NCBI RefSeq assembly: GCF_964188315.1
Contig: NC_135667.1
Span: forward strand, 12,152,001 to 12,216,000
Length of the DNA: 64,000 nt
Origin: Podarcis muralis
Taxonomy: Eukaryota
Direction of reading: 5' to 3'
A program made the position numbers and the translations under genes. Shown in pieces: positions 37,784 to 61,291 of the stretch. Each line of letters starts with the position of its first letter. Within the stretch, counting starts at the first letter, position 1. The notes under the pieces were generated by a model. It did no database searches. It saw only the letters and a list, made by a program, of their open reading frames with translations, and was not told the origin of the DNA.

Positions 37784-40700
37784 ATGGAAGTTCTTTTTCT
37801 CGTTCCTGTGCTAGGTATGTCTTGCTACTTTCTGATAACCCCAGCCTCTGGTCCTGCTCTGCTCTGTTCTGTCCACTTACCATATCTGAATAGAGAAGCA
37901 TTGGCAAGAATGAGCGATAACAGCAGCAACAAACACACCAGCTGCCTCAGAGGAAAAGGGTGTGGGCAGTGGTGCCTTGTATAGTTGCATGCTTAAAACT
38001 CATCAGTGTGGCCAGGCGAGAGTGTGTGTGTGTAATGTAAATTGATGTATAATTAATCTGAGCTACTGATTTGTGATGCATTTTGTACTTATTTCAGGAA
38101 TGAAATGTTATTGTTGTTTTTTTGTTTTTCACCACTACAATGATTTATTTTCTTTAATGTTGGCTGTATATTATTTTTTTTGGCGAACAAATACATTGCC
38201 CAAGACATGATCTTAAGCAGTGGTCTTCAACTAGTCCAGAAAGAAAAATCCGAGCCAGGAACATGGGGCCAGCTTTCACATGTTCATTTCTTATTTATAC
38301 TTTGTAGTATCCTCTCTTTGATTTCTGGAGGTTTTCTCTTGAATTAACCTGTGGCTTATATAGAGCAAGAGGAAAAGTCATTGTCCGCATTTATGCTTGC
38401 ATTATGTTGTCACTTACGGTCATCTCAACTTTCACAATCTTCCTGTTTCCTCTTCCTCTCCACTCATACTGTTTTCTACATTCTCTCTACCTTCTCAAAC
38501 TTTTCTGTACTTCAGCCTTCTACTTCAATTCACCTGCTCATTGTTGCCTTTTTATCTCCCTCTTCTTCCTTTGCTCACTTTCTTCCATCTTGTGTCATCT
38601 TCAATGCTGCCTTTAATTCACCTCTCTGTCATTTAGGTCCTCTCCTAATATCAGCTTTCTTGAAATAAAAATGCACAGGGTTTCTGGGAAAGTTCATCAC
38701 CCTCAGCACCCAATACAGACGCCAGTTGCTATTTGTTGCTCCTTGGTTGACGTTTGAGGAAACTTCCCAGATTCTGCTATACTGAAGCATCATATTCTTG
38801 TAGTTCCATAACAAACAAACAAAACGCTTTTCTTTCTTTTTTTTTCTTTTTCTATATAATGCCATTTTATAATTCTTTTTAAAAGCAACTAAATAAAACT
38901 AACCTTCATTCCAAATCAACACTGAAATATTAAAGATGCAAACTTACTTGAGAACAGGTCCAATTAAAATAAATGGGCCTTACTTCTGAGTAGACATGCA
39001 TAGGATTTGTATGTTAATTAAATTATGATTAACTAAGGTTCTCTCTCCCTGGTCAGCTGCATTTCCTTTCCCTTTCCTGCAGGTTTTGTTTTCTTCTTGA
39101 CATCTTCTGTGGCTGCCTTTTTCCCCCCTTTCTCACAATTGCCGGTCTGCCTGCCCTCTCCATGTATCAACTTTCCTGAACTCAGATGTACAGAAAATAA
39201 ATCTGATTTTTTCTCTCTCTCAGTACCCTCAGAACGTAATACAGGCAGAAGTGGAGAGGGGAGGAGATATAAAAACCTCCACAGGACTGAACATAGGTAG
39301 AGCTCAGACATAGCTACACAAACCAACAAACACATTTCATCTTATCCAGTATTTTAGGCATGTTTGCCCATTAAGTTCAGCTAGAATCCCCACACCATTT
39401 TCCTCCAGCCCAATCCTTCTGTTCCAAGCAAATAGAAGTCATTGAATAGCAGTCCTTACTGGTGAATAAACCCTCACATCTCTAGACTCGGGGCTGCCTG
39501 GATTCATTCCTCCCTGAGTGTTTCACCACCAACAGCTGCAGCCATTCCAGCGCTTCTTTTCTATGCAGAGGAGTCCAGTGGCTTCCAGGCTTCACAACAC
39601 AACCAGCTTTATGTGATTCAGTGAGGCTGCAATAGTCAGGTAAATAGCCTCTTCTCAAGCCAGGCAGGGTGTTTCCACTATGTGGGAGCATGGCTGGGCT
39701 GGTGCGAAATGAGGAGGGAACTCTCTCACATAACATACCTTCCAAATGCCCTGGAAAAAGAGACACATCCCGTAGTTTCTCACACAACCTCTGCGGCCAT
39801 TTTGGGTGTCGTGATCTGTCATGCTCTCACCTCAAAGAAACACTTTTCCCAGGGCCACGACCCCACACAGCTCCCCAAAACTCATGCTTTGGAGGCACTG
39901 TACAATATCTCACGAGGCGCATGTCATGTGAGTCTCCCAGGAACAGGTCCTGGAAGATGCACATTCCAGTTTTGCATCGGAAGAAGTTGGAAGGTAAGAC
40001 ATAAGAAAGAGGAATAAAAAACTGCAGCCTCCAGGTTGGACTGAAGGGTTTGCGTGGTGATGGCAGTTTTTCTGTGACCCGCCTGGCATGGCCATGCAGC
40101 CAACCTGTGGGTACAGACCCATTGGCTGAAGACCGAAGCCTAAGGTCTTCTTGAAGCTATGCAGGTCTGGGGTCTGGTCAATGCTTGGATGGGAGCCTAC
40201 CTAATACATATGCTCCCTTGAGGCAAATATAACATGTAAATAATCTTCAGATCAAATCAGTTCAAACTTCCAGGCCTATTTAACCAGTTCCATCCCTCCT
40301 TTTTTATTTCTCTCTTTCAGTTTTCCTGCATCTTGTTCCGCAGCCAGCGTCATCTGCAGGTAACATTCCAACTTCTTCCCAGTGAGTTGTTTATGTGGAG
40401 AAGACCAGAGTGTCTGTAGAGAAGAATCCTTGTCTCTTTTGTGCTGTTGTTTAGCAACCCAGCACCCCCTCCAGCTGCTTTGTGGTTCCCCCAAGTATGC
40501 TAGTAACTTCACTCTTATACATGGGTACTTTCCAGGAGCAAACTGTACCACACTTAACAAATCCCAGTGCCACCTCCTTTTGCATCACTACTGCGTATTA
40601 TAAAAGCGAAGTCACCCTCCAAGTGTGAATCCTTATGTAGGTAAAATGAAACATATACCCATGTTTAGGAGCAAAGTTCCTGGCATGCTTGGGGAAAACT

Positions 40701-43700
40701 GCAAGGATTGCAGAACTACAAATATATATATATTTAGGAGGGGAGGGGGTGGAATGAAAAGTCCTCAAACAGAGCTGGGCTGAATAAGACAGTTTGCAGA
40801 AACACAGAGAATAAATTTTAAAAGTATGTGGGGTGGGATGGAGTAACCTGGAACAGGGCAAGGCTAAAACAGAGCACCCCACACTGTGACAGTTCGTTTC
40901 AGGTTCCACTTGTTTGCCTGCCACTGAGATCCCTCTGCTTTTCTTCCAGGATCTCTCCCTCCCCCCAAACTCTCGGTACAGACAAATTATCCTGAATACT
41001 TTGAAGGCGAGAGGGTTGTGCTCATATGCTCAGCTTTCCTAAACAGGACGGTGGAGGGATACAGGTTCTTCAATCAGGATGGGCAACAAATTCTCAAAAT
41101 GGCTGCCGACCCTTATCAAAAGGGCAGACTGTTTTTTAGGGCTGAAATGAGCAAGATGGGAAATTACAGCTGTGATTACTGGATGGGGAAAGCTAATACA
41201 GAGGTCACATCTGCCCGAAGCAACTCCATCTCCCTACAAGTGAAAGGTAGGTTTCTAGTTCCTGGGACGTTGGTGGCCTGTTCCAATGAAAATTTAAGGG
41301 ATTGACTGTCCAATTCATTTTCTTCTCCTCTGCCACTTGCTACATCTGTCACCCCCAATTTGATGTCCTCTGACACCCCTCTTGATGACTGACAAGGGCC
41401 CATGCCCTCCCAGTTTTATCATTCTTTCTTTTTTAAGTGGGTTGTTTGGTTGGGGTGTCCTCATTGCTAGCCGGTGGCCTGTTTCTTTAGTTTGTGCTTT
41501 ATTTGTTTTGGTACATATGTAGATATTTTGCATGGCTTTTTGGGGGGTTATAGAGTTTCTAGACATTGTTCCTCCCCTGGGAAATGTGATTTGCTGTTGT
41601 TGTTGTTGCTCATGACTAAGAAATTGTCATTTCCCAATGTGAGCCTGGACCCAGAAAGTCTGGGGACCCCAGTGTTAGAAATCTACAGCCTTGCTCATGG
41701 CGGAGTAAAGGTAAAGGTAAAGGTACCCCTGACCATTAGGTCCAGTCGCGGACAACTCTGGGGTTGTGCGCTCATCTCGCTCTATAGGCCGAGGGAGCCG
41801 GCATTTGTCCGCAGACAGCTTCTGGGTCATGAGGCCAGCATGACTAAGCTGCTTCTGGAGAACCAGAGCAGTGCACGAAAACACCATTTACATTCCTGCC
41901 AGAGAGGTACCTATTTATCTACTGGCACTTGACATGCGTTTGAACTGCTAGGAGGGCAAGAGCTGGGACTGAACAATGGGAGCTCACCCCGTCGTGGGGA
42001 TTTGAACTGCTGACCTTCCGATCGGCAAGCCCTACCTAGGCTTTGTGGTTTAGACCACAGCGCCATCCTCATCCCAGGGCGGGGTAGGGGTGGATAACTA
42101 TGCAGAATACAAATGACATGATTAGCAAATCACAGCTTTAAAATAAAGAACAAAATAAATGCCTTGGGTGGGAGGTGGCAGCCATCAGCTTAATCTTTCC
42201 CTCCCTAGAAACAATCTCAGCAAAAATCAGGCAAACACACATATAAGGTGCTACTGGAAGGAATTTTTTTTGTTTTGACTATGGCAGACCAACACAGCTA
42301 CCTATCTGTAACACATATACGCTATTAGCTTTCGGGTGGGGGAACCTCTCACTGTTATGTAACACACTATACGGAGGACCCTTTCTGTACTTTTGTAGCC
42401 CCGAAAGTGTAGAATGAACAAACGTATTGCAAATGCACTCATTTGCTGCAATAATAATAATAATAATAACCTTTTGGGAAAATTATAGCTTCAGGTGGCT
42501 ATTTTCAGCAGAAAAAAACAGTGCAGAAGTGTTGTGCCTGCAAGTTGCCCGCATCAATATGATGAAGGGGAGGAAGCTCTGCTGTATATATATCTGCTTC
42601 TCTAACCGGAACAATCTCTCAACAGCTCAATGGCCTTCTGCACACTGAGTATGACTTAGTTGAACATCAGCCCTTTTTTATGTTTTCAATTTTTTTACTG
42701 TAGAGAAGAGAAACCGAGTTTGCAGGAAGTTTCCCAAAGAAAAAATGTTTAGGCAATTACTTTCATTCTTAGTTATCAGTTTTGGGGAAAAGAAACTAAA
42801 CTTGTTGGGAAAATGTGGAAAGGAGCAGCAAAACCACTAAGTGGCAGCAAAGGCTAGGTTATGCAACCTGAACGCTCCTTTTGACTCTTTTCCTGCTAAG
42901 CTTCAAATTCAAATTTCCGGGTTGTTTCCAACTATTTAATGAGCCCAAATGAGCCGTGTTAATTAGCTATTCTGAGTAGTACTAGCGTTGAATAAAACCC
43001 TCAGATCCCTTTCATCGTATGTACAAAGTTGGATAGGAACATTTTAGTGCAACTCTGAGACAGGAGTGAGAACATGTTGGGAATGTGGGCTTGGGAGAAC
43101 ACATCTTTGTTTGGAGTTCTATCCTGGCATGTGATACCCAAAATCCTCCTGACACAGTGCATGTGGAAGGCGTTGTGGCCTTCTGCTGACAGCTGTAAGT
43201 TGCCCATGGCTCACTTCCAAAAAGCACCAAGCCTGATAGACCTTTATCTTGATATTGGATGCTAGCATCACGTTCTCCCATACCCTTTTGGAGAGGTGAG
43301 CCATTGCCAATACACTGATTATGGTGGAACCCAGCACTGTCTACCATCTCAAGTGTGTGGTCACCAGTGCTGATACATGGAGTGCTGGCGACATCCTGAC
43401 CCAAGACATTGGGCTTTATCTGCGTCTTTAGGCACACTTTGTCGTAATCTATGTATTTTTGTGCTTGGGACGCGGATGGCGCTGTGGGTAAAACTGCAGT
43501 GTCTAGGACTTGCCGATCATATGGTCGGCGGTTCGAATCCCCGCGGCGGGGTGAGCTCCCGTCGTTCAGTCCCAGCTCCTGCCCACCTAGCAGTTCGAAA
43601 GCACCCTTAAGTGCAAGTAGATAAATAGGGACCGCTTTATAGCGGGAAGGTAAACGGCGTTTCCGTGAGCTGCGCTGGTGCAGGCTCGCCAGAGCAGCGT

Positions 43701-45855
43701 TGTCACACTAGCCACGTGACCCGGAAGTGTCCTCGGACGGCGCTGGCTCCTGGCCTCTAGAGTGAGATGAGCGCACAACCCCAGAGTCGGACACGACTGG
43801 CCTTCGGGCAGGGGTACCTTTACCTTTACCTTTATGTATTTTTGTACACATCTCTTGGCTACAGAACCGCATTTCAAAATTCAGAGAAGTGTGGCTGTGT
43901 TTTAGTTTTTCTGTCAAATCAGTTAGGTTCACCTTTATTTTTATTTATTTTTTAAAATGTTTTTATTAGCAATTTCAACATAACAACATATCAAAACATA
44001 TCATATTCATTATTTCCCCCTCCCCCCCCGAGACTTACCTCAGCTCCTCTCTCTGATTTCTCAACCCATATTATTCTCTGCATGTTATAAAATTATACAA
44101 ATCCTCACATTATCTATCTACCATGTTATCAATCAATAAATTTGTGTATGTTTATTCAAAACCTGCCAAGGAGTCCAATTCATTTTGTTGTCTTTTTAAG
44201 TAATTTGTGACAAGTTCCCATTCTTCTTTAAAGTCACAGTTGTCCTTATCTCACAGTTTGTATGTCAGTTTGGCCAGTTCTGCATAGTTCATAATTCAGA
44301 GAAGTGTGGCTGTGTTTTAGTTTTTCTGCCATTTTAGAAAGTGCAAATCAGCCAGGTTCGCCTTTAAATGGGAACTAAATCACATTTCTCCTCCATCCTT
44401 CAATTATTTCATTGCAAGCCTAAAATCTGATGTCTAAAAATGCTTCCCTGCCCTCACCCTATCTCTCTCTCTTCCCACCCTCTCTCTCCACCCACCCAAC
44501 CATTGCAAGCATACTTCAGGGTGGAGGAGTTTAGCTAGCCTCTGTCTCTGTGTTACACGAAGCAATCTCAACCCTGGGTGTTTATCTTTCTTTCCCAGAA
44601 GCCCCAGAAGCCCCCTCCCTCTCTTTAAACCCAAGCCTCCTTGAGTACAACCTGGGAGATAATGTCAGCCTTGTGTGCTCAGCTCCGCCTGAAAGAAAGG
44701 AAGTCAAGGAGTTCCAGTTCTATAGCGACAAAGAGGAAATATCAGTTGTGCCTCCATATGGCAACGTCTACACTCACAACATGAGCATCATGGAACCCAA
44801 AGATGTGGGAAGCTTCATGTGTGGTTACGTAGTGGACCTCTCTGGAAGAAAAGTTATTTCAAAGAAGAGTAATTCTGTCACCATTGCTCAAACNNNNNNN
44901 NNNNNNNNNNNNNNNNNNNNNNNNNNNNNNNNNNNNNNNNNNNNNNNNNNNNNNNNNNNNNNNNNNNNNNNNNNNNNNNNNNNNNNNNNNNNNNNNNNNN
45001 NNNNNNNNNNNNNNNNNNNNNNNNNNNNNNNNNNNNNNNNNNNNNCCTTTAGCCAATAAAGGCTCTCAGGGCTGCTGGGGGGGGGGAATCAATATTAAGA
45101 TGGGCCCTGCTCTCAGACTTACAATCCAAAAATAAAAAGAGACAACATGCAAAGAAAAAGGGAGTCAGAGGGAGAAGGAAAATACAAGCTGAAGTAAAGG
45201 TTCTTAAATTTGCAGATCTTATTGCGCAGTTAACAAAAGGAATTCTTCACTGGTGGCTCCTTGTTGTCTTCTCATTGATAAAGAACATGCTTTGTTTTGA
45301 AGCACTCTTCCTCCATAGATCACATGTGAGAGCAGAGTCAATGCCCAGCCAGGAGGGTAGGGCAGCTTCTACCACAGACATGCTGCTTGAGTTGCATCTG
45401 ACAATCCCCACTGGAAATGGTTCCTTCCATCACAGATGCACAAACCTTTGACTGGATTTTTCCAGCTGGCCGTGGGGGAAGCAGGGAGTGGGGCAATGCT
45501 ATCTCTCTTGCAAACCTATCTTCCATAGATTTGGTTGCGAGATCAGGAATTGATAAGAAAGGTAAATCACATGGCGAGATTCTGTAGAAATAACACTCGG
45601 AGAGTCTGTCAAAATGACTAAGAAGCATTAGGTGGTCCAAACCAATATCCACAAACTCTTATCTGATTCTGAATAAGAGAACCCAACTTCGGTGAAATGT
45701 GGCATCTTTTCATTACACTCTGTAACCAGAAACTCTTTTTCTTAGTCAACGGGAACTTAGACAACTTTTCCAGCTGGAAACGGATGGCGGCCATTGGTGG
45801 CTCCTTCTTCACCATCAACAGCCTCATCTTCCTCATCTCCCATTTGTGTTTTTAA
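37784..45855 (+). CDS. Two-Ig-domain, tail-less FcR/LRC-like receptor, copy 1 (~252 aa)
   Basis: Exons 37784-37814 (MEVLFLVPVL), 40321-40359 (39-nt mini-exon VFLHLVPQPASSA), 40950-41246 (Ig D1), 44599-~44895 (Ig D2, last bases in N gap), 45761(or 45746)-45855 (hydrophobic segment plus TAA). All junctions phase 1; visible splice sites are GT-AG and mirrored in copy 2. Confidence 0.82.
41704..42075 (-). mobile_element. Sauria SINE
   Basis: Reverse-complement (ACCTTT)n tail and GGGATGAGGATGGCGCTGTGG 5' end. Confidence 0.9.
43040..43400 (-). mobile_element. Degenerate RTE-clade LINE fragment
   Basis: Translation HNAFHMHCVRRILGITCQDRTPNKDVFSQAHIPNMFSLLSQ resembles the RTE post-RT region. Confidence 0.7.
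43467..43832 (+). mobile_element. Sauria SINE, full length
   Basis: GGGACGCGG..GGCGCTGTGG 5' end, GGTTCGAATCC B box, (ACCTTT)n tail, 13-bp TSD TATGTATTTTTGT at 43450-43462 and 43833-43845. Confidence 0.95.
43938..44292 (-). mobile_element. L1 LINE 3' fragment
   Basis: Minus-strand translation MNYAELAKLT...FKEEWE resembles the squamate L1 ORF2 C-terminus; A-rich tail at ~43938-43960. Confidence 0.7.
44894..45045. other. Assembly gap
   Basis: Run of N covering the D2 splice donor of Ig gene copy 1. Confidence 1.
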
Positions 45856-46288
45856 ACCACAGGTAAGTGAAAAGAGTAAACATTTCCTTTCGAACATGTA
45901 CTTTGGAGCACGTGTGGCCCAATACATTTTTTGGGTTTAAGGGTTTAAGATGATTCAGTTTCACTGAAACCCACTGTGGTGTTAGATGTGTGATGGTGAG
46001 GCTTCCGAGACTTGAGCCTTCCATCATGCAAAGCAGAGATGAGAAACCGTCGCTGGACTATGTCCCCTACCATCCCAGATTATTGGCTTTGCTAGCTGTT
46101 GAAGTCCAGCAACATCTGGGTGGCAACAGGTTATTCATCCCTGATTGAGCCCAGAGTTGTCTTCCTTGATTGGCCATGACATTCCAGATCACTTTCTCAC
46201 CACCTGTGGAGGCTGCGGGGAGTGGGGGCATTGCCTCTGAGGCAAAGGATCAGGATCATGACATAGGGATAGTTATATCTAAACCATT

Positions 46289-46640: not shown

Positions 46641-49600
46641 CCTTTATATTCACCAGTGGACACCGGAGTGGGTCTTCTACCCCAGGAGAAGAGTTATGTG
46701 GCCTCCACTCCCCTAGCAAAGAACAATGACCAACCGAAAAGTGGCATGACACCACCAGAAGAGATCGAACTCATTGCCTCCTTTGCTGATTTACCAGTGG
46801 TGGAACAAAAAGAAATGATTAATAGACTGGAATCGCTTAAAACCCAACTTATTAGGAAGCTCAGCACCAGAATACTCACGTACAGCGAACATGACTCCCT
46901 AGAAGAACCAGATCATATGGATCTCTCAATAGCTAATGCTAAATGTATGTCGGCAATGGAGGATAAGATACAACCCCAAGAAGCAACTACCAGTCCTTCC
47001 CTCCAAGCAGAACAATCCTCTGTGCTCTTAATAGATTTACATGGCCGTCCATTGAAAAACATACCTGAAGAAAGTAGCACACAACAGGAAAAATCCCCTT
47101 CTACACATTCATCGATGCCAGACCTGGAACCTTCATATAGCACTGACCAATCAAGAGAAGAGGTGCCTTTGCAAACCCTCCCAAATAGCCCTCTCGCCCA
47201 GCCTTACGGATTCAACAGCAAGACCAGTGACGGAACTGATTGAAGACCCGACAGGCCACATAAATCAAGTAGCCCAAAAGACCAGTAGCAGGCTACAGAG
47301 AGACCAAACTCCTGACGAGATAGCTGGTCCATCCCGGGTGGCCCACCAAACTCTTTTGGAAAAGGGGTCCGCCCCTGTTCAAAGTCCTACTCCTAGTAGA
47401 TCGAGGGGCCAAGCTCAACAGTCAGATGACCTTGTAAATCCCACTCAGCCTTTACGAGAGGTTTTTCAACAGAGGAAGATAACTGATTTCTTTATTGGCT
47501 CCCCTCTTCCCGCATTAAAGTTGAGCCAATTTTCCGAATGACAGTCAATTGGAGGAACGGGGAAACCCCAGCCTTCAATATTAAGTTGGAACATTGCTGG
47601 TTGGAAAAGTAAAAAATTAGATCCAGAATTCCAAAAATATATTAATTCCTTTCTTATCATACTATTACAAGAAACTTGGGTGGAGGAGGAAATTGAGTTA
47701 AATGGCTTTGAGTTTATATGTCTGCCTGCTAGCCCGTCAACGAATGGTGGCCGCCCTAAAGGTGGCCTTACAATTGGTATCTCCCTCAAACTTTGGGCTA
47801 AACTTTCACTAGTGCATGCATTTCTGCCTTATGCTATTACCGGACTGATCTCTGGTGGAAACTTCTCTTTATTGGTTACAAATGTCTATTTCCCTCCGGG
47901 AGGGTTAGCAGCTGATCTTACTTCTAGATGGGAATCCCTAGAGGATTTTTTACTTTCTTGTTATCTTAAGTATCCCAATGTTCCCTCCATTACTGGAGGC
48001 GATTTTAACGCTCGGATAGCATCAAGTCGGGAGGCTCTTAAAAAGTCTAAGTGGTGGGTTGACCCCGGCGTTCAAACCAACAATCTAGTATACACCCCCA
48101 CTAGAATATCAAAGGATGTAAAAGTCAACAAGGCGGGAGTGATGCTCTATCAGATGACTCTACGCCTTAATTTAATTATATTAAATGGCAGGTGTCCTCC
48201 AGACATACCAGGAGAGTTCACCCACCTGGGGTTAAAATCAAACAGTGTTCTCAACTATGTATTGGTTTCCCGGGATCTATTCTTGAATGTCACCTCTTTT
48301 AAAATTGATAATGCCCAACTTAGTGACCATCTTCCCCTGACAACCAAGTTATGTGTTGACTGGCAGTTGCTCAACCGCTCCCATCCAATCCCGGTGATTG
48401 TGGAGTCGTCCACTAAAATAAAGGGGACTAGATGGTCCCCTGCCCTCGCTCATAGATATATGGATTTTATCCGAGAAAAGTTTTCTGGTGATCAGATGGA
48501 CGTAGGAATAGTCCTGCGTGATCCTATTACCTGTATGAATTGTTTTTCTCGCCTGATAGAAGTTTTAACTCACTTTTTTACTTCTACAACCTATGGAGCT
48601 AAAAACGATTATTTTAAATTTGGCACCCCTTGGTTCAACTCTGCTTGCAAACTAGCCAGACTCCATCTACATACAATATATAATGACTATAAACTTTCCG
48701 GTGCTCCAGCCTTACCTCCATCTTATTCCCTGGCTAAAAAAGCATACAAACAGGCCCAGAAATCGGCCAAACGGGAGTGGCACTTAAATCGTTGGCAGAC
48801 TATAATTTCTGCCTCAAAATCTCATAACTCCCGGAAATTTTGGTCCTTAATAAAGGGAAGAAACACGAAATATCCCTTAACGATGATCCCGGCCCCTACA
48901 TGGGAGCATTTCTTGAGAAAATATTTCTCAGTGGCAGAAGCTCCGGCCACTCATTGGAGACCTTCTAATCCCCTTCCCGTCTGGCCTAATACCGACCCTG
49001 CTGAAATCCTAGAATTGATAGCTGAGCTGAAAACTGGTAAGGCCCCTGGGCCAGATTTGGTCCCTGTTGAGGCTATAAAGCTTCATTCTGCATGGTGGGC
49101 AGGGATTTTAGCTAAAACGTTCGACGCAATAAATGCCACGGGCTTAATACCAGGAACGTGGAAGGAGGCCATTATAATTCCTATCTACAAAAAAGGCCCT
49201 CCCGGTGACCCAGGGAATTATCGGAATATCAGTCTGCTATCGTCCATTGGGAAAATATATGCCCGTTTTTTGCTGGCAAGGCTGATGAAGTGGTCAGTTG
49301 AGGCTGACCTGATTGGACATGAGCAAGCTGGATTTAGATTAAACCGATCCACAACAGACCAGGCAATTATTCTTTATCACTTAGCCCGGAAATACTCGAC
49401 GCCTCGACGGGGCCAACTCTGCGGACCTTTCATAGATCTGAAAGCTGCGTTTGATAGTATTCCGAGGAAATTACTATGGGATAAACTTGCCTGTTGGGGA
49501 ATAGATAGAAGGCTATTGTGGCTTATCTCCCAACTTCATGCCGGGTCCGTGGCCAGGGTGAGATTATCCCCTGCTGGAGATCTGACTAACCCAGTGCCAG

Positions 49601-51173
49601 TAAATAAGGGTGTACGCCAGGGTTGTATTTTAGCGCCTCTTCTTTTTAACTTATTTATCAGTGATATGAGGAACCCATTAGCCGTCTCACAAAAATTTAT
49701 CCACTCCCCTCGTATAGCAGATTACCGCTGTCCTTTACTTCTCTATGCAGATGATGCAGTACTACTCTCTTACTCCAGAGTGGGTTTAAGGAGGGCACTA
49801 AAGATTTTTGCGACATATTGCCATTCTAATCATCTGTCTATCAACCACACCAAGTCCAAAGTACTGATATTTTCAAGGAGTCGAAAACTTTATTCATGGA
49901 AACTGGAGGGCACGAAATATCGAACAAGTACATAAATTTAAATATTTAGGAATTTATTTTCAATATAATTTAGGGTGGAAAGCGCACGCTGAATATCTTC
50001 AAAACAAGACAAAAGCCCTATCACACTCCCTCCTCCGTTTTTTCTATTCTGAGGGGACCTTATTCATCCCTGCGGCCTTGAAAGTGTATAGCATCAAAGT
50101 GATGGCCACAATGGCCTATGCTGCACCTTTATGGGCTGCCTTTGCAAATCTCTCACCTTTAGAGTCACTTCAAAGCCAATTCTTACGCCGACTTCTAAAA
50201 TTACCAACATGCGTAAGTAATGCGGCTATCCGCTTAGAAATGAAGATCCCCTCAGTGGAGTTAGTTATATGGAAGAGAGTTTTGATTTATTGGATATCCC
50301 TATGGCATAAACTCCCGAACCACTATCTCATTCAATGCATGTGGCGAGATGACTTCACAAATTTGTGGTCAGGAAAAATCCATGCCAAATTGCTGTCCTA
50401 TGAGATCTCGCCCACTGAATTGCTCAAACTGGATCTAAATGTGGCAAAAAGGTGTATAAATCAAAGGCTGGATGATGTGGAGCTATACCAAAATTTCGTA
50501 GCTGGTGGTGGAGTCTGCTCGCCGCTAAATTTCGCATAACCCCTATCTACCGCACTCCGTCCTACTTAACATCGCTTACGGCCGCGTCTCACCGATATGC
50601 CTTCATTAGAGCTAGGTTTAATGTCTTTCCAACAAATGTGCTGAGACATAGATTCACTAAGGGCCAAGTCCCTTCAATGTGTGCGTGTGAAATGAAAACA
50701 TCTGAATCTCTACATCATGTTATGTTTATCTGCCCTTTGTACAGTTCAGCCCGTGCTAGTATACTAAACTCCATAATCCAGCCTATGGCTGACAAATCAG
50801 TAGACCTACAGCTGGCCTGGGTTCTTCAAGATGTGGATCCTTATATTACCCTACAGGTTGCTAAATTCCTAACTGCCGTCCTCTCGTACAAGAGACGGAA
50901 TGGAATGTTAGCTGATTATTGATAGTTATAAGAATTTTCTATAATGACATCAGATATTGATTTTAGTGTAGTGCCTAAATTTTTTAAATCTTAATCTTAA
51001 ACTTTTCTTATGAATGGCTAATATCTGTCCTTGTGAGTTGAGAACTGTGTTATACTACTTGTGGCTTGTACGAGTCCGCTGTTTTATTTGATTTTATTTG
51101 TTTTGATTTGTTTTGTTGTGTTGTGTTTCATGATGGGCGTAAAGCCGAATAAACATTTTGATTGATTGATTGA
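46641..51173 (+). mobile_element. RTEX-like non-LTR retrotransposon, probably 5'-truncated in ORF1, frameshifted
   Basis: ORF1 pieces 46656-47243 and 47227-47541. ORF2 has APE (SWNIAGW, LQETW, GDFNAR, SDH), RT (DLKAAFD, GVRQGCILAP, LLYADD) and C-terminal C-x-C...H...C. 3' AATAAA plus (ATTG)n tail; 8-bp TSD TATATCTA. The clade call is from recalled motif style, not a search. Confidence 0.8.
47542..50922 (+). pseudogene. ORF2 (APE-RT-Zn knuckle) of the RTEX-like LINE, two frameshifts
   Basis: Open 47542-49935; frameshift near 49915 (continues IEQVHKFKYLG in another frame); second frameshift near 50530-50560; ends at 50922. Confidence 0.85.
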
Positions 51174-52077
51174 TATATCTAAACCAGCCTGGGTCCCACC
51201 ACCTCTCTAGCAAGCTTCACATTATTTATTTATTTATTTATCTGAACTGGTCCCATTCCCAAAGCATTCCACCTCAAGCGTCACAACACTGGGAGTTGGG
51301 GAGGGAAATGGTTGGTCTGGGTTGCATCTTTGCCTTGAAGGTATGATCCAGGGAAGCCTCTCATCTCTTGCTATTTTTAAAATCATGTTTAGGACTCCTC
51401 TTCAGGTGACTGTAATAGTCCTCTTTGTCCAACTGATGGCAGTCGGACCTCAGCTCTTCATCAACCCGATTGTGGATTCTATCACCAAATGAGCCAGCTT
51501 CCCCCATAAATCACATAACCAGAATATGGATCCATCTTACACAAAAGAGCACAAACAGAGGGCTGTGGGGTGGAAACCAAGTTCTGGGGCATGACATATG
51601 CAGTGGAAATCTTTTTGATTGCTCTGTCTCTATAGGCTTTATCATATATTATAAGTGACTTGCTGCAGCAATTGTTTCAGGGGAGGGGGGAGAAATTGAT
51701 GGCTTTGAACAATCATTTTGTTGTGTAAACCTGTCACAGGAATGAGGACCTTCTGGCCCTGCAATGTTGCTGAATTTCAATTTCCGTCAGCTTCAGCCAG
51801 TTTCCTGATCCCTGCTCTAACATGCGGCTTCCCCCCTCCTCCTTTTTTTAAATGAAAAAACAAAAATAAAAAACCAATTCATCGAAAGCAACAACGACAG
51901 CAACTCAGGTCCTTCCAACCTTTGGGACAATTGCTTTGAAACTTGTGCTTTTCTTTTCAACATTCTCCTCTCAGTGTTAGTGGCTGTCTGATACGCCTAG
52001 ATCAGCCCTAGCATTTGTAAATATATTTCACTCCCTCAATAAACATGAACAATTTTTATATTATTATTATAATCATT

Positions 52078-53205: not shown

Positions 53206-56200
53206 ATGGAGGTTATTCTTCTGGTTCCCATGCTAGGTATGTTGCTACTTTCTTTCTCCCCCAACCTCTTCTTCTACCACTCCTTTCTCCTGGGTTTTAA
53301 TTCCTGCTTTGATCCATCATAAAAGAATCATCTGGATAAATTTTTAAACTGGCTTCAGGGCTAGCAATTGCTGAGAACACGCTCTGACCCATACGAGCCA
53401 ACTCCTTGGAGGTGAGGGGTCTTTGGACCCCCCCCAACAAAATATTTGAGGGCGCCACCCCCCAAGTTGATGGGCATTGCCATTCAAGTGCTGTGTGTGC
53501 ACAATATCATGGCGCCAAGTGCCACTACTGGCCAGTTGGCACTGTGCCCAGCGGAATGCCCCCTAAATTCCTGTTCCCTAAATTGGCCATTACGGCAGCA
53601 GGAGGATGATCCAGCCTGCTAGAGGCCAGTTCACAAATGAGATACAGTGCCAGCCAGCCCGAAGAGGGCAAACAGACTTCTCAGTTGCATCCTCACTAGC
53701 GATAGCTGAGAATTTAAATTCAGTTCATGTTAATGGGTGAACCGACCTAATTCACATGTTCCAAAATGAGACATGAAACAGAAACGCAACCGTCCTTCAA
53801 AATTCACATTTTCCAAATTTTGAAGGGCAGTTCTGCAGCCAAGCTACGCGTGCAAAAGTACATGCGTGCAATATGCATGTAAGCATTCTTATGAATGCAT
53901 GTATATAAAAATATACGTGGAGGGGGGAATCATGCAAAGTGCATCATATTATTGAAAATCGTTTTCCACAAAAAGGCATATTAAGTGAATTGGATACAGA
54001 AATTGCTGCATATTAAGAGAAACTAAAATACTGCTGAAATTTCATGAGGATTTTTTTTGGGGCGGGGAGCTAGAAACAGATGTGGAAATGTGTGAAGCAG
54101 AACTTAACAGCTGAGTAATGAAAAGCAGCTAGTAACCACAAATGGTCATCTCTCATCCTGGACTATGTCATGGTGTGTATGCAAATATACAAGTCTGTTA
54201 TTTCGACCCTCGTCATCCTTTCTGTCAGAATAATAAACACACAGAGAAAGAGAGGGGGGCTATGGGGCCTCTTACACTTGACATTCTCTAGGGCTCAGCA
54301 TACCTGGTCCTCCTCTGCCTTGCTATCACTGCCAGCGTTCACCCACTACCTCTGTACAAGCAAGCAACAACAATAGTGAGGGATTGGCAGCGGCGCCTCC
54401 CACCTGCCTGTGCTTCTCCTCTGGGTGGTAGTCTGGATGGGGCTCAGAGGCAACTGGAATGGGCAGCAGTGATTTGGGCAGAGGGAGGATGAGAGCCCAC
54501 TGAGAGACACCCTCTTCCCATACAGGAAGAGACAGAGAGTCCATAAGGGGGCGCTGTGGGAGCTTTGCTCATCCCTCCTAAAGAAAACCGAGAGCCTGGC
54601 TAGAGGTCTCTTCTTTTTTGGAACATCAGAGCAAAAGTGTGTAAGGATTGCCTTGGTGGATAAGACTCGGGTATGTGCTTTAACACTCTTTAATTCGCAA
54701 CACCATAGCCCATATGGTGCAGCCAAAGCCTGCAAAGTTGAACTTCTCAGTCGGACCATTCCTGTATTATGTCCAGTCACTTCAATCCTTTGGAGAGGCC
54801 CTCTTAGTAGTACCTTACGCTCACGAGGTTCATCTTACATGCGCTGAGAAAAGGGCATCTGAGTGTGGTAGCACCTGTCCTTTCGAAGTGCCAGAAAACA
54901 TCAGGCAGACACCTCCAACATCGTCAAAACTCGTCCAGCTTTCCTGGGGGGCTGAGAATGATCCGGCATACTTGACATTCAATTTATCGGACCTACTGAT
55001 TTGTGATGTGTTTTGTACTTATTTCAAGAATGTGATTTTTGTTCATTTTATGCTCTTCACCATAATGATATCCCCCCCCCCCCCCGTAATGTTGACAACA
55101 TAGTTTTGTTTTGTAGGGGCTAAATAATGCATAGGGATTTGATGCTGCAGCCTTCCTGAAGCTATGCAGGTCTCAGAGTCCGGTCAGTGCTTGGATGGGA
55201 GCCTACCAATGAACCTTACATGTGCTCCCTTGAGATAAATATAACATGTAAATAATCTTCAGATCAAATCAGTTCAGACTTCCAGGCCTATTTAACATGC
55301 CTCATCCTTCTTTTTTATTTCTCTCTTTCAGTTTTCCTGCATGTTTTTCTACAGCCAGCATCATCGGCAGGTAACATTCCAACATCTCCACAATGAGTTG
55401 TTGATGTGGAAAAGACAAGAGTGTCTCTAGAGAAGAACACTTTTCTTTTGTTCAACTCTTAGAGCCAACTTCCTCAACCTGGTGCCCTCCAGCTGTTTTA
55501 GACTACAACTTCCATTATCCTCTGCTGATCATACAGCATAAAAGTAGTGAATTTTGACATTTTTATTGCAGAAATCACACTGTGAGGAAAATCAAATTCC
55601 ACTTGTCAAATTTGACCCACAAGGCCGATACTGATAAAAATCTGGCCTGTGACGCCAGAAAGTTTCCCACTGACCCCTGGAGCAGGACTTGTGATATCCA
55701 GGTTCAAATCCCTTCTCCAGCCATGGAGCTCAGTGCGTGATGTTGGGCCAATCACTAACAGACCCTCCAAATGTCCCTATTTTCCAGATATGTCCCTGAT
55801 TCAGAGAAGCCGTCCTGGTTTCTGATTTGATCCTGGAATGTCCCACTTTTCCTTAGGATGTCCCTATTTTCATTGGAGAAATGTTGTGGGGTATGCACTA
55901 ACTCTCAGCCTGACCTACTTTACAAGGTTGTTGTGAGGTGAGGAAAAGTGTGGTGTATGCTCAGTTGGTTTACCACAGTTTCCCCTCTTGTATCCTGGAT
56001 GAGTACATTCAGCGAGTGCTTATAGGGGATATTCCAAAATATGACTGTCTGCACCTGTAGTCTGAAGTGGTACAGTCCCGAATCCCACCACCTCAGTCTT
56101 CCTCCTCATTTTTGTGCAATGTTGCTCCAACTTTCCATGAAGAGACTGTAGAAAGCTTCTAATTCCCAGGATGGCTTATGTATCATAACAGAATTCTATA

Positions 56201-59196
56201 TGCTGACAGTGATCTCACTCTCCACGTGTGGGTCCTAATACAGCGAAAATGATACCATCAGGGCAGGAAAGGGAAGTTACCAGCAGGCATTGGGGGAACC
56301 TCACGTTTGCAGAAGTATAATAAAATATTTCAGGAATAGCATGAGGGGGAGAAATGGAATGGAGCATTCTGTAAGGGATCTGGTCTGTATCTCATGGTCT
56401 GCAGAATTTTTTAGAAGCATGTGGGGGTGGGGTGGAGTAACTTGGAAGAGAACAAGGCTGAAACAGAGCACCTCACACACTGTGACAATTCTTTTCAGGT
56501 TCCCCTTCTGTGCCTGCCACTGAGATCCCTATGCTTTTCTTCCAGGGTCTCTCCAACCCCCCAAACTCTTGGTACAGCCAAATTATCCCGAATACTTTGA
56601 AGGCGAGAGGGTTGTACTCATATGCTCAACTTCCCCAAATGAGACGGTGGAGGGATACAGGTTCTTCAATCAGGACGGGCAACAGATTCTCAAAATGGCT
56701 GCCGACCCTTATCAAAAGGGCAAACTGGTTTTTAGGGCTGAAACGAACAACACAGGAAATTACAGCTGTGGTTCCTGGATGGGGAAAGCTGACACAGAGG
56801 TCACATCTGCCCGAAGCAACTCCATCTCTCTACAAGTGAAGGGTAGGTTTCTAGTCCCTAGGACATCAGTGGTTCTGTGCCAGAAAATCCCTTGGGGCAT
56901 ATAATAGTTTCTGACTTCTACTTTCATCAGGGAAGCAGTACTAGGGAAAGTTTTGGATCTGCATGGTAGATTCAACCTATATTCAGAGGAGGTGCTCTGT
57001 AGGGCCAGCCTATCCATGAGGCAATGTGAGGTGACTCCCTCAGGCAGCAGAATCTACAGGGGCAGCAGATCTGGCCTCCCAAGAATGTGTCAGCCACTGC
57101 TGCCTCCACAATGACAGCTGTGGTGTGCTCCTTGCGGGCTGGATCTGCCCCCTACTTGGCTGCTGCCTCCCAATGCCAACTGTACAGCAGTCTCTTGGTG
57201 AATAGGAGGTGCTGTTCCCATCCATGTTCCCTGTGTAGATCTTCACTAGGGCTAGGGAAATGGACACCATTTTGTGGTTTGCCTCAGGTGCCAAATTGTC
57301 TTGGGCCAGCCTGGATGCTCTGCTATAGCCATTGCATTAACTCTGATCAGCAGAACCGGGCCAGAACTTCCTGGACTACAGCAGCAAATCCTAACCACAC
57401 CAGGTGGCAGAAAATACCAATTTATGCAGTCTCTATGCTTGTTTTGACAGTTCCCTGTCTGCAAAGTTATTTGAGAGGCCTGTTTTTGTGCACGCCGTTA
57501 ACTGAAGGTAGATGGATTATCTGGCTGCAGAATTGCATTGCAAATTTCAAAGGGTGTGAGAGGTTCGGTTAGCATGTGGTTTCAGAAAATGCAACTGGAT
57601 CAGATTTCTTCCCCAACCTTTGCGTCCTTTCACCTTGTCAAAAATTAACCTAAAAACAGACATCTGAATCTGCATCCTCTCTCAATTTCTCTCTTCCCAC
57701 CCAACCATTGCAAGCATATTTCAGGATAGAGGAGTTAGTATAGCTGCTGGCTCTGTTACATAAAGGAATCTCAACCTTGAGTGTTTATCTTTCTTTCCCA
57801 GAAGCCCCGGAAGCCCCAGCCCTCTCTTTGAACCCCAACCTCATCAAAAACAACCTGGGAGATTCGGTCAGCCTTGTGTGCTCAGCTCCACCTGAAACGA
57901 AGAATCTCAAGGAGTTCCAGTTTTATGGCGACTGGATTAGCGTCTCAGCTGTGGCTTCACACGGCAACATCTACATCTACAACATGAGCATCACGAAGCT
58001 CAAGAATGTGGGACTCTTCAGGTGTGGATATGTAGTGCATCTTTCTGGACGGAAAGTTATTTCGAAGAAGAGTAACCCTGTCACTGTCGTTGGACCAGGT
58101 AATCTTTGGGTTTGTTTATTTATTTATGGCATTTACACCCTTTTGCCAATAAACACTCTCAGAGCTGCTTGGAAGGCGGGGGACAGTATTAATACCCTCT
58201 CTGCCCTCAGGCTTACCTATTTAAAAGGGGAGAGGAGTGGGAGGGAGAAGGGAAAAACAAGCTTAAGCAAACGCTCCTAATGTTGCAGCTCTTATAATGT
58301 AGTTTGCCCAATCTACAAGGACTTAAGAGCAGCCTTGTTCAAAAATTTAAATATCCCAGGTGAGAAGTGTTTCATTAGCTGTTTATTAGGGGACAGGTCC
58401 CCCTACACCTCTGAAAAAGTGCTCATTTTGCATTTAGGGTGACAGTTTTAAGGAGAAAAGTTTGTGGGACAGGTAAGCTAAATTCTTCAGGGGAGCAAAA
58501 TCTTATCTGACAGAATGCTTGCCTTTAATAGTTATTTTAACTGTGCAGTGTATTTTATTCTTCGTAATGCATTTGTTTTCTGTATTTTTTCATAATGGCT
58601 TTTACTACACAGATAAATAATAATATTCATATTCATATAATGCATTTACCCTCCTCCATTACTTATGTCAGTGGGGGTTTCGGCCTCCCAAAAAACAATC
58701 TACCCTCCCCAGATCAGACCCAGGAGCAGAGCAGGTGACCATGTTCCATCCAGGAGGACGGAGTAGCTCCTACCAAATCGTAATTCCTCATAAACGCTTC
58801 CCTTCTGCTGCTTGAATTTCTCAGGCAGTCTTTGGGGAAAGCATGCATAATGCTATCTCTCATGCTCATGTAATTCTCAGGTTTTGAGATCAGGATTAGA
58901 TAGGAACAATGAATCACACAGGGCAATTCGATAACAATCTCACTGATAGGAGTCTGCCAAAATGACTAATAGGCATTCTGAGGCCCAAACCGGAATTACG
59001 AAGCCTTATCTGATTCTGAAAAAATGGCACCCGACCTACTCAGCAAAATGTGGCAACTTTTCATTGTACTCTGTAGCCAACAGCTCTTTCCCCCCTTGTC
59101 TACTTAGGCACCAGATGGGAACGGATGTTGGCTATTGGCGGGTCCTTCTTCACCATCAACAGCTTCATCTTCCTCATCTCCCACTATTGTTTTTAA
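53206..59196 (+). CDS. Two-Ig-domain, tail-less FcR/LRC-like receptor, copy 2 (250 aa)
   Basis: Exons 53206-53236, 55332-55370 (39 nt), 56546-56842 (D1), 57802-58098 (D2), 59108-59196 (GTRWERMLAIGGSFFTINSFIFLISHYCF-stop). Total 753 nt in frame, canonical splice sites. Predicted 3' UTR exon from 60214; AATAAA at 60628. Confidence 0.87.
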
Positions 59197-59727
59197 ACCA
59201 CAGGTATGGTAAGTAATGCACTTTCTGCAGAAAATCTCCATGGATTAAAGGATTTCCTTTCCCCCCACACTTTAGGAAGAGTACTTTGGGACAGGTGTGG
59301 CCCAAAACATTTTTTATGGTTGGGGTGGGTGGGGGAGAGAATGGCGTCACTGCCACCCCAGTCCAAACACACACACACACATACGTGGCAACAGTCATTC
59401 AGATCTTTGTAACATCCAGATTATATCACTGTAGCACGTGCTACTGAGTCTGGAAACTGCACTCTGGCTTCCAGGTGTCTGGAACAGTTGCTTCAGAACG
59501 TAGGAGCCAGATTGTTATCTGATAGGAAGGATACAGCGTGGCGTTGTCTTGTCTCCCGTGGCCGCCTCTTCATTTCCAGGGCCATTTCAGAGTGGCGCGG
59601 TCTTGATGCGGAGAGCCCTGAAGCAGGTGCGAGGAACCTGGAATCCCTCCAGATCTAGTTGAACTCCATCTGTCACCAACCCCCAGCCAGCATGGCCAGT
59701 TGTTAGGGCTGATGAAACCCAGTAATA

Positions 59728-59968
59728 CAGTCAAACCTTGGTTGTCAAACGTAATCTGTTCTGGAAGCCCATAGGGCTTCCGAAAAGTTCGACAACTGAG
59801 GCGCGGCTTCCAGTTGCTTGCAGGAGCTTCCTGCACTCAAGCGGAAGCTGCGTCAGACGTTCGGCTTCCAAAAAACGTTCAAAAAACGGAGCATTTACTT
59901 CCGGGATTTTGGCGTTTGGGAGCCAAACTGCTCCAAATTGGAGGTGTTCAGGATCCAAGGTTTGGCTG
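59728..59968. mobile_element. Tc1/mariner-Tigger-type MITE
   Basis: TA|CAGTCAAACC...GGTTTGGCTG|TA. Confidence 0.8.
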
Positions 59969-61291
59969 TAGCTGGAAAACCAGAGGCTCCAAACTAGCAC
60001 CCCCCCTCTCTCTCTCTATCTCACTTCAAGTTATTATTTTTGCTACTGTATGTAGTCAAAATCTGTCTGAATTGGTCCGATTCTGAACTCATTACAAATG
60101 TCACGGGATTTGGAGTCGGGGAAGGAAAGGGTCTTCCTGGTTTGAATTTTTGCTCTGATGTTATCATCCAGGAAAGTCTCTCATCACTTGCTATTTTTAA
60201 AAATCGTTTTCAGGTCTCCTCTGCAGAGGACTGGAATGTCCCCTTTGCCTGGCTGATTGCAGTTCTGCCCTTATCAGCTTCTCTTCAATCAGATTGCGAT
60301 ATATTGCTCCATTCATCAAATGAACTCGCTTCCCCCACAAATCACATTTCACAGAGGGAAAACCCGGATCCTCCCATCATGAAAAGAGATTGTTTTGATT
60401 GTGTTTCATTTTATGGACATTATTACATTTGTAAACACATATTACCGATTCCATTAACTTGAGCAAAACAATTTTAATATTCTTTTAAAAAAGAGAGAGA
60501 AAGGAAAAATCAACAGCACCACAGTAGTTTCAATTAAAATAGATTTTGATCTTTGTTACAGGAAACTAGCATGCTCTCTTTCAATCAAACCCTTCTTTTT
60601 AATGAATTATTTCTAAATCTGCATACTAATAAATACAGTTTGTATTCCACAATCAGAGATACATTCCTGGCTGCCACTGGTGATCCAGTTTTTAACCCCT
60701 TCCCATCACAAGGTGGGTGAAAGAGTGTAAAGTAAACAGACAGATGTCCCACACTTTTGTCAGGATTCCTATTGGGTTCCTCTCTGCCCCTGCAAATCCT
60801 TCACAAGCCAAGGCTGGTGTGTGCCTAAGGGAGAAACTGCTCTGGGCCACTGTATGACTTGCAATGCTGGACACCAAGTCATGTGTTGAAAGTTGTCTCC
60901 AACAAAGGAGTGCTCTGATTAGACCCATTTAATGCAATGGGCTTACATTAGTCATGTTCCTTCTTTGAAATGGGTCTATTCTGAGTCATGGACTTCAGCT
61001 AATGCTGAGTCACAGTGTTTAAACCAGCTGTTTCAGTGCTTTCGCAGAATGATATGGGCTAGAGAATGCCTCTCTGTGACTGAATTAACCTTTGAGGTAG
61101 GCAAATGCCTTCCCCCCACACACACCTTTTCTTGACTTAGCTTAAAGATGCAGTCCATCTTTCTTAAAAACAACTATTTCAAATGCAGGGCCAACCCAAG
61201 ACATTCGGCTGATTGAGGCAAAGGATAAGATGACGCCTCTGTCTCCAGTAGCTGACTGGCGATAGTTTTTTATATTTTATTTTTTCATTTA

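Follow-up and report, generated by a model that had tools for sequence, protein, structure and literature searches.

Two tandem genes, designated copies 1 and 2, lie in the window analysed here, a 64,000-nt stretch of the Podarcis muralis genome (contig NC_135667.1, positions 12,152,001 to 12,216,000 of the forward strand). They encode receptors with two immunoglobulin (Ig) domains, and their reading frames close directly after a transmembrane (TM) helix. This reptile helix joins a boundary Arg with a Phe-x-x-Asn spacing like that of CD64 (FcgammaRI), is more conserved than the ligand-binding domains, and occurs in sauropsids and a caecilian. We interpreted the receptors as probably remaining membrane-spanning and needing a partner helix for stability and signalling, most likely a homodimer of the Fc receptor (FcR) gamma chain, or of zeta (probability roughly 0.55).

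Conservation of the TM helix

The membrane peptide of copy 1, WKRMAAIGGSFFTINSLIFLISHLCF, is encoded by positions 45775-45852 and followed by TAA (45853-45855). That of copy 2, WERMLAIGGSFFTINSFIFLISHYCF, is encoded by 59116-59193 and followed by TAA (59194-59196). Both peptides, and their termination at a stop codon, had been proposed in an earlier note on this DNA, and both were found at these positions with the TAA confirmed. The start given there for the copy 1 segment, 45761, fell inside the TM exon (45746-45862), 14 nt upstream of the first codon of the peptide.

Both copies read ACC ACA G after the stop and then have a GT donor, 7 nt 3' of the stop; the acceptors are in phase 1. Among the differences between the copies are four synonymous third-position changes in this frame, and homologues share it, which supported the reading frame. 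The other two frames of the exon encode low-complexity strings of Ser/Pro or His/Leu.

Word-based searches returned full-length predicted proteins of the same architecture from Podarcis muralis, Lacerta agilis, Zootoca, Rhineura (two), Elgaria, Hemicordylus, Sceloporus, Varanus and Gekko. In all these squamate orthologues the C-terminus lies 0-5 residues past the helix. In a profile search of 1.8 billion representatives, 1927 matches had an expectation value (E) of 1e-3 or less. The helix, W-x-R-x-L-A-V-G-G-S-F-F-x-I-N-[GS]-L-I-F-L-x-S-H, was also present in turtles (Carettochelys, Pelodiscus and Emydura), Alligator, the crane Balearica, a snake and the caecilian Rhinatrema. The non-lizard proteins that carry it span 201-683 residues, and the ectodomains of the family have two to six Ig domains. 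A third search added further snakes and turtles. Only snakes and turtles appeared among the 19 candidates from a word-based search with the snake TM region, which gives little information on mammals or amphibians.

In an alignment of 19 representatives, G10, F13, I16, N17, I20 and F21 were invariant, and F14 was nearly so. The Asn, conserved in all 19, occupies position 12 of about 19 core residues, i.e. the lower half of the helix. A Phe stands at -3 from it in 18 of the 19 (Ile in Sceloporus), an invariant Phe at -4, an invariant Ile at +3 and a conserved aromatic residue at +4. The residue after the Asn is Gly in 14, Ser in four and Ala in one; Ser occurs in lacertids, the alligator and Carettochelys, Ala in the caecilian and Gly in most species. 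The boundary Arg was present in 16. The earlier note had made its reading depend on conservation of the Asn in homologues, and this was found: the Asn, the Phe at -3 and the aromatic residue at +4 are kept from the caecilian to the lacertids.

The pattern FxxN[TSGA] was present in 43 of 45 proteins bearing the module and in none of 85 other TM segments of relatives. It is not a chance feature of the window.

A Cys two residues before the stop (45847-45849 and 59188-59190, in H-x-C-F) was common across the family. As a speculation, it may be palmitoylated and so help to keep the tail-less helix in the membrane.

The profile search also brought up related anchors. P0123 has a true NxxR helix of the TM1 type (DYTQGNIIRFSIGG...LDQSF-stop), P0102 is a tail-less variant without the Asn (WIVDAAIGGSFFLIIILIFLITHVFL-stop), and P0144 is a long-tailed, uncharged relative (AAVGGSFCLLFIIFLILLWRYK...) whose core, G-G-S-F...I-F-L-I, is similar. 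The occurrence of P0102 and P0144 suggested that the module derives from an ordinary anchor of the same family, and all three anchors should be useful for tracing how it arose.

Selection on the helix and its physical properties

The squamate TM core is under stronger purifying selection than the Ig exons. Mean pairwise identity among squamates was 78% in the TM core and 56% in each Ig domain. The ratio of non-synonymous to synonymous differences per site (pN/pS, Nei-Gojobori) was 0.29 for the TM core (21 codons), compared with 0.56 for Ig1 and 0.45 for Ig2. These are rough measures, pooled over non-independent pairs of squamate sequences (seven sequences for the TM core and six, with no snake, for the Ig exons). 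The pS values were alike (0.41, 0.36 and 0.49, respectively), which argued that the similarity of the TM core was not due to recent gene conversion.

The helix is only marginally hydrophobic. Its mean Kyte-Doolittle value was 1.86, compared with 2.73 for the TM segments of the 85 relatives, a gap exaggerated by the choice of comparison segments at values of 1.9 or above. In an AlphaFold2 (AF2) model (mean predicted local distance difference score, pLDDT, 82), residues 222-249 form a single helix.

Tailed relatives and the origin of the stop codon

In paralogues from sea turtles and other turtles (P0181-P0186), the identical helix leads into M-K-[GS]-K-G and a tail of some 60 residues, which contains SDYYSV and a C-terminal NEYQEEV. 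SDYYSV fits the pattern of an immunoreceptor tyrosine-based inhibitory motif (ITIM). Basic residues also come after the helix in the proteins of the crane, the caecilian and Emydura. Since the tailed paralogues carry the helix with basic stop-transfer residues, we take it to be a true TM span.

The ends of the TM exons were compared (slash, exon boundary). The tailed Dermochelys gene reads ...TGC ATG AAG AGC AAA G/gt, the tail-less Carettochelys gene ...TGC TTC TAG ATC CAA/gt, the lacertid and Rhineura genes ...TGT TTT TAA ACC ACA (G or A)/gt, and the Elgaria gene ...CTT TCT TAA GTC ACA G/gt. As aligned, the stop of lizards and tail-less turtles occupies the first cytoplasmic Lys codon of the tailed turtles, and the donor is kept.

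In snakes, a single additional T precedes the ancestral stop (TCT TTA AGA AAC AG/gt in Erythrolamprus, L004:15413). The frame is thereby shifted past the stop, and a tail of 14-19 residues is read from the next exon. The Gekko gene (L003:15622) is without the stop, gains a few residues from the same next exon, and has an apparent GC donor. The start of this exon in snakes and Gekko matches the 3' untranslated region (3'UTR) exon of the lizards. Overall, the snake and gecko tails have 5-19 residues and no tyrosine motifs. The lizard proteins have no cytoplasmic tail, and hence no tyrosine motif of their own, whether ITIM-like or like an immunoreceptor tyrosine-based activation motif (ITAM). No significant relic of the turtle ITIM-like tail was found in the lizard downstream exons; the only match was a seven-residue positional one of the snake tail to the exon start at 60214.

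Structure and expression of the tandem pair

Each gene has two signal-peptide exons (31 coding nt and 39 nt), two Ig exons (297 nt each) and, as the fifth, the TM exon. From signal exon 1 on, every junction is in phase 1 in both copies. Full-length analyses used the Podarcis muralis orthologue P0001, a database protein whose identity with copy 2 was 97% in the Ig2 search, about 95% over the Ig1 exon and complete in the TM exon. The P. lilfordi model P0005 is the orthologue of copy 1. All exons are on the + strand, as follows.

37784..37814, +: copy 1 signal-peptide exon 1, from ATG to the GT donor, encoding MEVLFLVPVL (tblastn of P0001 and P0005, and donor sequence)
40321..40359, +: copy 1 signal-peptide mini-exon 2, 39 nt, phase 1 (tblastn and sequence)
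40950..41246, +: copy 1 Ig1 exon, phase 1/1 (Pfam Ig_2, E=6.5e-7)
44599..44893, +: copy 1 Ig2 exon (Pfam Ig_2, E=4e-8); its last bases and donor lie within an N stretch (44894-45045)
45746..45862, +: copy 1 TM exon, with the Arg codon at 45781-45783, the Asn codon at 45817-45819, TAA at 45853-45855 and the GT donor at 45863
51393..51516, +: start of the copy 1 downstream (3'UTR) exon, with an acceptor, homologous to copy 2 from 60214 onward (blastn); P0005 maps here
53206..53236, +: copy 2 signal-peptide exon 1, encoding MEVILLVPML (tblastn and donor sequence)
55332..55370, +: copy 2 signal-peptide mini-exon 2, 39 nt (RNA joint 55370>56546)
56546..56842, +: copy 2 Ig1 exon (Pfam Ig_2 match; RNA joints)
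57802..58098, +: copy 2 Ig2 exon (Pfam Ig_2 match; RNA joints)
59108..59203, +: copy 2 TM exon, with the Arg codon at 59122-59124, the Asn codon at 59158-59160 and TAA at 59194-59196; donors after 59203 or 59208
60214..60650, +: copy 2 terminal 3'UTR exon, with AATAAA at 60628-60633; the RNA contig extends about 48 nt beyond 60600

For copy 1, the 3'UTR entry covers the start of the exon only and was placed by homology. P0005 reads past the TAA into the exon at 51393. This requires a non-canonical GA..AG internal intron (45760-45821), and we rejected it as an annotation artefact.

Identity between the two copies is 75-89% where they can be aligned, which is confined to the exons and near flanks (blastn). 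They represent an old tandem duplication and hence are not independent of each other.

Four RNA runs were compared with the region 54700-60600 (copy 2 only), and two of them, two samples of one study, yielded spliced contigs. The GT..AG joints were 55370>56546, 56842>57802 and 58098>59108, followed by 59203>60214 or, alternatively, 59208>60214. The contigs matched the window without a difference in the TM exon, and one of them ended about 20 nt after the AATAAA at 60628. Copy 2 is expressed and spliced as modelled.

The two alternative donors lie 5 nt apart (ACAG/gtatg/gtaagt, 59204-59208). Both were used in RNA and, being 3' of the stop, they alter only the 3'UTR. Nonsense-mediated decay usually follows a rule of 50-55 nt for the distance from stop to last junction. 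The copy 2 mRNA, whose stop is only 7 or 12 nt upstream of that junction, would be expected to escape it.

The RNA contigs of the two samples differed from the window at three sites in Ig1 (56629-56789) and at seven or eight listed sites in Ig2 (57837-57994), with the TM exon unchanged. Eight of the 11 listed changes were non-synonymous, e.g. N>D, N>Y, T>M and H>Y. The ligand-binding domains look polymorphic.

Directly upstream of the pair are class C G protein-coupled receptor exons of the vomeronasal type-2 / CaSR kind (29306-30316 and 33726-34526, + strand; ANF_receptor 2e-28, 7tm_3 1e-82). A retroelement of the long interspersed nuclear element type (46656-50922, + strand), with a 751-aa reverse-transcriptase open reading frame (RVT_1 5e-33), separates the TM and 3'UTR exons of copy 1, lying in the last intron of this gene.

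Family of the ectodomain

By sequence, Ig1 matched FCRL5 (3.4e-16), FCRL4 (6.8e-10) and FcgammaRII (about 1e-3) in the PDB, and Ig2 gave only non-significant matches there, to CHIR-AB1 and LAIR1. A family profile ranked FCRL5 (3e-43), CEA, FCRL4, PIR-B and LILRB1 above FcgammaRII. Foldseek with the AF2 model placed LILRB4, OSCAR, NKp46 and GPVI first, then FcgammaRII. The TM-scores were low because of the inter-domain angle, and the fold search does not separate receptors of the leukocyte receptor complex (LRC) from FcRs. The relatives are named by NCBI as 'Fc receptor-like protein 5', 'alpha-1B-glycoprotein-like', 'IGSF1-like' or 'uncharacterized'.

The signal peptide is split over exons of 30 and 21 bp in FCRL1-6, FcgammaRI and FCRLB (PMC2413239). 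The lizard signal exons, with 31 coding nt and 39 nt, depart from this FcR/FCRL rule. The second signal exon of LRC genes has 36 bp.

From these comparisons, we filed the genes as members of the FcR/FCRL-LRC superfamily, nearest to FCRL and not among the classical FcRs. The best explanation appeared to be that they are two paralogues of a sauropsid receptor family lying between the FCRL and LRC receptors. The earlier note had considered activating receptors with a motif of the classical FcR type; the ectodomain itself has its best sequence matches in FCRL5, FCRL4 and PIR-B/LILR and is probably not of the classical FcR kind.

Comparison of the helix with adaptor-docking motifs

Adaptor docking has been described in some detail. 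For CD16A and FcepsilonRI-alpha, the binding of gamma/zeta dimers relies on F-x-x-D-T, located in the lower half of the TM domain, and CD64 is proposed to use F-x-x-N-T (PMC13107469). In this mode, the Asp or Asn bonds with a Thr of the adaptor, the Thr bonds with an adaptor Tyr, and the Phe fills a gap opened in the dimer (PMC13107469). In CD89 and other LRC receptors, an upper Arg docks to the Asp pair of the adaptor (PMC13107469). Xenopus FcR-like receptors with an NxxR TM segment need FcR-gamma in order to be expressed on the surface (PMC2413239). The classical motif, (M/L)Fxx(D/N)TxL, was not found in Xenopus, and classical FcRs are viewed as mammal-specific (PMC2413239).

None of the 45 module proteins matched the literature pattern, whether as (M/L)Fxx(D/N)TxL or as FxxDT/FxxNT. 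Relative to the classical motif, Phe for Met/Leu at -4 and Ile for Leu at +3 are conservative replacements only. The classical docking motif claimed for the helix in the earlier note therefore held in part: the Phe and Asn are spaced as in the FxxNT of CD64, but the Thr is absent.

We also considered an NxxR helix of the LRC (TM1) type, which had been guessed from the W-x-R-M start. There is no Asn at -3 from the Arg (R, S, F or Q instead), no DYT and no acidic C-terminal end, and the register is off by one residue. This assignment was rejected.

Proposed anchoring and signalling

The protein terminates at the cytosolic end of the TM helix, where a stop stands in place of the first cytoplasmic Lys codon of the tailed relatives. 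The former splice donor remains in use, so that the next exon has become 3'UTR. In the proposed mechanism, the Asn and Phe would engage the Y(small)xxxT site of the partner, in the way proposed for the FxxNT of CD64 and shown for the FxxDT of CD16A and FcepsilonRI-alpha. The boundary Arg, 12 residues above the Asn, would be placed to reach the Asp pair of the partner. The Asp of human FcR-gamma stands 11 residues above the Thr that belongs to the Y(small)xxxT site.

A retained partner-packing helix seemed the best explanation because strong, sequence-specific constraint has long been kept on a marginally hydrophobic helix with nothing on its cytosolic side. FcR-gamma, or zeta, seemed the likeliest partner because it is the adaptor of both known docking modes in the superfamily, and because the Phe-x-x-Asn spacing of CD64 and the Arg-Asn spacing both fit. 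We infer the existence of the partner, its identity and the signalling output from these features.

Several observations weigh against docking to FcR-gamma. The reptile helix has Gly, Ser or Ala at the position of the Thr in FxxDT/FxxNT, the residue proposed to bond with the adaptor Tyr. A TM-only profile gave no match to any PDB sequence at E up to 10, with full-length FcepsilonRI-alpha chains among the sequences searched. The boundary Arg is replaced by Gln or Leu in three of the 19 representatives, and in turtles and the crane it is followed by an acidic residue, so that it may sit outside the bilayer. Outside the 19, the Asn is replaced by Ser in Crotalus and by Ile in the paralogue P0102. 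One-sided conservation was not significant in a helical moment test (P=0.28), since nearly all positions are conserved, all round the helix. Finally, the helix is no marker of activating forms, with which the earlier note had associated it, as the turtle paralogues join it to an ITIM-like tail.

Alternative explanations

The mid-membrane Asn might instead drive homo- or hetero-oligomers of the receptors themselves, the tail-less forms serving as non-signalling partners or decoys with no ITAM adaptor. A single Asn in a TM helix drives strong helix-helix association. Conservation over the whole circumference of the helix would fit such self-association, and the sharing of the helix by tail-less and ITIM-like-tailed turtle paralogues would fit their pairing. 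However, no long-tailed squamate partner with the helix was found among the 150 best matches within protein-length limits, and the short tails of snakes and geckos offer no tyrosine motif. We regard this explanation as unlikely.

Another possibility is that the hydrophobic C-terminus is cleaved as the attachment signal for a glycosylphosphatidylinositol (GPI) anchor. What remains as the mature protein would be a two-Ig ectodomain held by a lipid anchor, like human FcgammaRIIIB. The hydrophobic segment lies at the protein end, without a cytosolic tail or basic stop-transfer residues, and in many squamate orthologues the small residues G-[PT]-G stand about five residues before the Trp, a distance suiting an omega site, which is expected some 9-12 residues ahead of the hydrophobic stretch. 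There is also a precedent for such a switch, in that the GPI and TM forms of FcgammaRIII differ by few substitutions, one of them altering a stop codon (PMC2189395).

A cleaved signal needs hydrophobicity only, yet in the tail-less squamate helix pN/pS is below that of the Ig exons, and the polar Asn, Ser and His are kept. The putative omega region shows no conservation. Pro occurs at +1 in Podarcis and Rhineura, G-x-G is missing from Hemicordylus, Sceloporus, Gekko and copy 1, and G-[PT]-G is also absent in Zootoca. In the tailed paralogues, moreover, the identical helix is a bona fide TM span. We consider a GPI anchor rather improbable. The earlier note had offered either an adaptor-dependent receptor or a GPI-anchored decoy; dependence on a partner remains the best reading, and the decoy is disfavoured because the helix is under purifying selection and is shared with tailed paralogues.

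That the genes are decaying remnants of tailed receptors, as a premature stop inside an exon with a working donor and a downstream exon without a conserved reading frame might suggest, is very improbable, because the tail-less state is common to every non-snake squamate sampled and to paralogues in turtles and the alligator, the exons are all intact and subject to purifying selection, and copy 2 is transcribed and correctly spliced.

Implications

The proteins themselves are already predicted in public annotation, where they are listed as 'uncharacterized', 'FCRL5-like' or 'A1BG-like'. In the literature searched we found no description of the helix as a conserved module, nor of reptile FCRL anchors; the motif strings are too short to search usefully.

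ITAM adaptors are known to be docked in two main ways, either by a basic residue facing the adaptor Asp pair (the NxxR type of LRC and Xenopus receptors) or by the FxxD/NT of mammalian classical FcRs. If the reptile helix docks to FcR-gamma, it would add a third module, and an old one, to these ways of docking, and it would become possible to test how the classical FcR anchor originated. The helix also supplies natural variants of the recently proposed docking mechanism, in which the Asn is followed not by Thr but by Gly, Ser or Ala. Should the helix not dock to FcR-gamma, there remains a well-conserved, tail-less single-pass receptor whose mode of anchoring needs explaining.

The GGSFFxIN[GS]LIFL of sauropsids and the caecilian might be a non-mammalian counterpart or ancestor of the classical FcR anchor (FxxD/NT), which we consider doubtful. 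Were it so, the use of the Y(small)xxxT site of FcR-gamma for docking would be older than mammals, and the squamate receptors with two Ig domains and no tail would be functioning analogues of FcgammaRIII and FcepsilonRI-alpha, possibly receptors for antibodies (IgY, IgM or IgA). The anchor type and classical FcRs are held to be mammal-specific (PMC2413239, PMC4016189), and this view would then need revision. The interest would be greater if the link to the classical FcR anchor were one of common descent.

Comparison with known systems

CD64 resembles the lizard receptors in the uncharged Asn of the lower-middle helix, the Phe at -3, the aliphatic residue just before the Asn and the aromatic residue at +4. 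The two-Ig lizard receptor, too, is without a signalling motif of its own. It differs from CD64 in having Gly, Ser or Ala for the Thr, Phe at -4, Ile at +3 and a conserved boundary Arg. It differs further in its FCRL/LRC-like ectodomain, in a second signal exon of 39 nt instead of 21 nt, and in the lack of a cytoplasmic tail.

FcgammaRIIIA and FcepsilonRI-alpha share with the lizard proteins two Ig domains and a polar residue in the helix, and their A form depends on gamma/zeta dimers. That residue is Asp in them and Asn in the lizard, and the sequence similarity is weak (for FcgammaRII, E about 1e-3 and confined to Ig1; for FcepsilonRI-alpha, not significant). In FcgammaRIIIB, the B form, loss of the tail accompanies a different anchoring. 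Unlike this young GPI derivative, the lizard helix has been kept tail-less over hundreds of millions of years.

The LRC receptors with a TM1 helix (FcalphaRI, OSCAR, GPVI, NKp46 and LILRA) and the Xenopus FcR-like proteins (XFLs) have an outer Arg followed by small residues, R-x-x-I-G-G, comparable with R-x-L-A-I-G-G in the helix described here. Their tails, too, are very short or absent and their Ig domains, too, vary in number, and a true TM1 helix occurs in the relative P0123. The reptile helix, in contrast, has a mid-membrane Asn that is absent from TM1, does not have the Asn at -3 from the Arg, the DYT or the acidic end, and is displaced in register by one residue.

In the bifunctional receptors KIR2DL4 and chicken CHIR-AB1, as in the turtle paralogues, a TM residue that is polar or charged occurs together with an ITIM-like tail. 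In these two receptors, however, the Arg lies within the helix, and the lizard genes have lost the tail.

The T-cell receptor (TCR) alpha chain has unrelated Ig domains and an assembly based on Lys/Arg. Like the lizard receptors, it is a type I protein in which only a few residues follow a TM segment that is polar, highly conserved and marginally hydrophobic, and it needs signalling dimers, as is proposed here for the lizard receptors.

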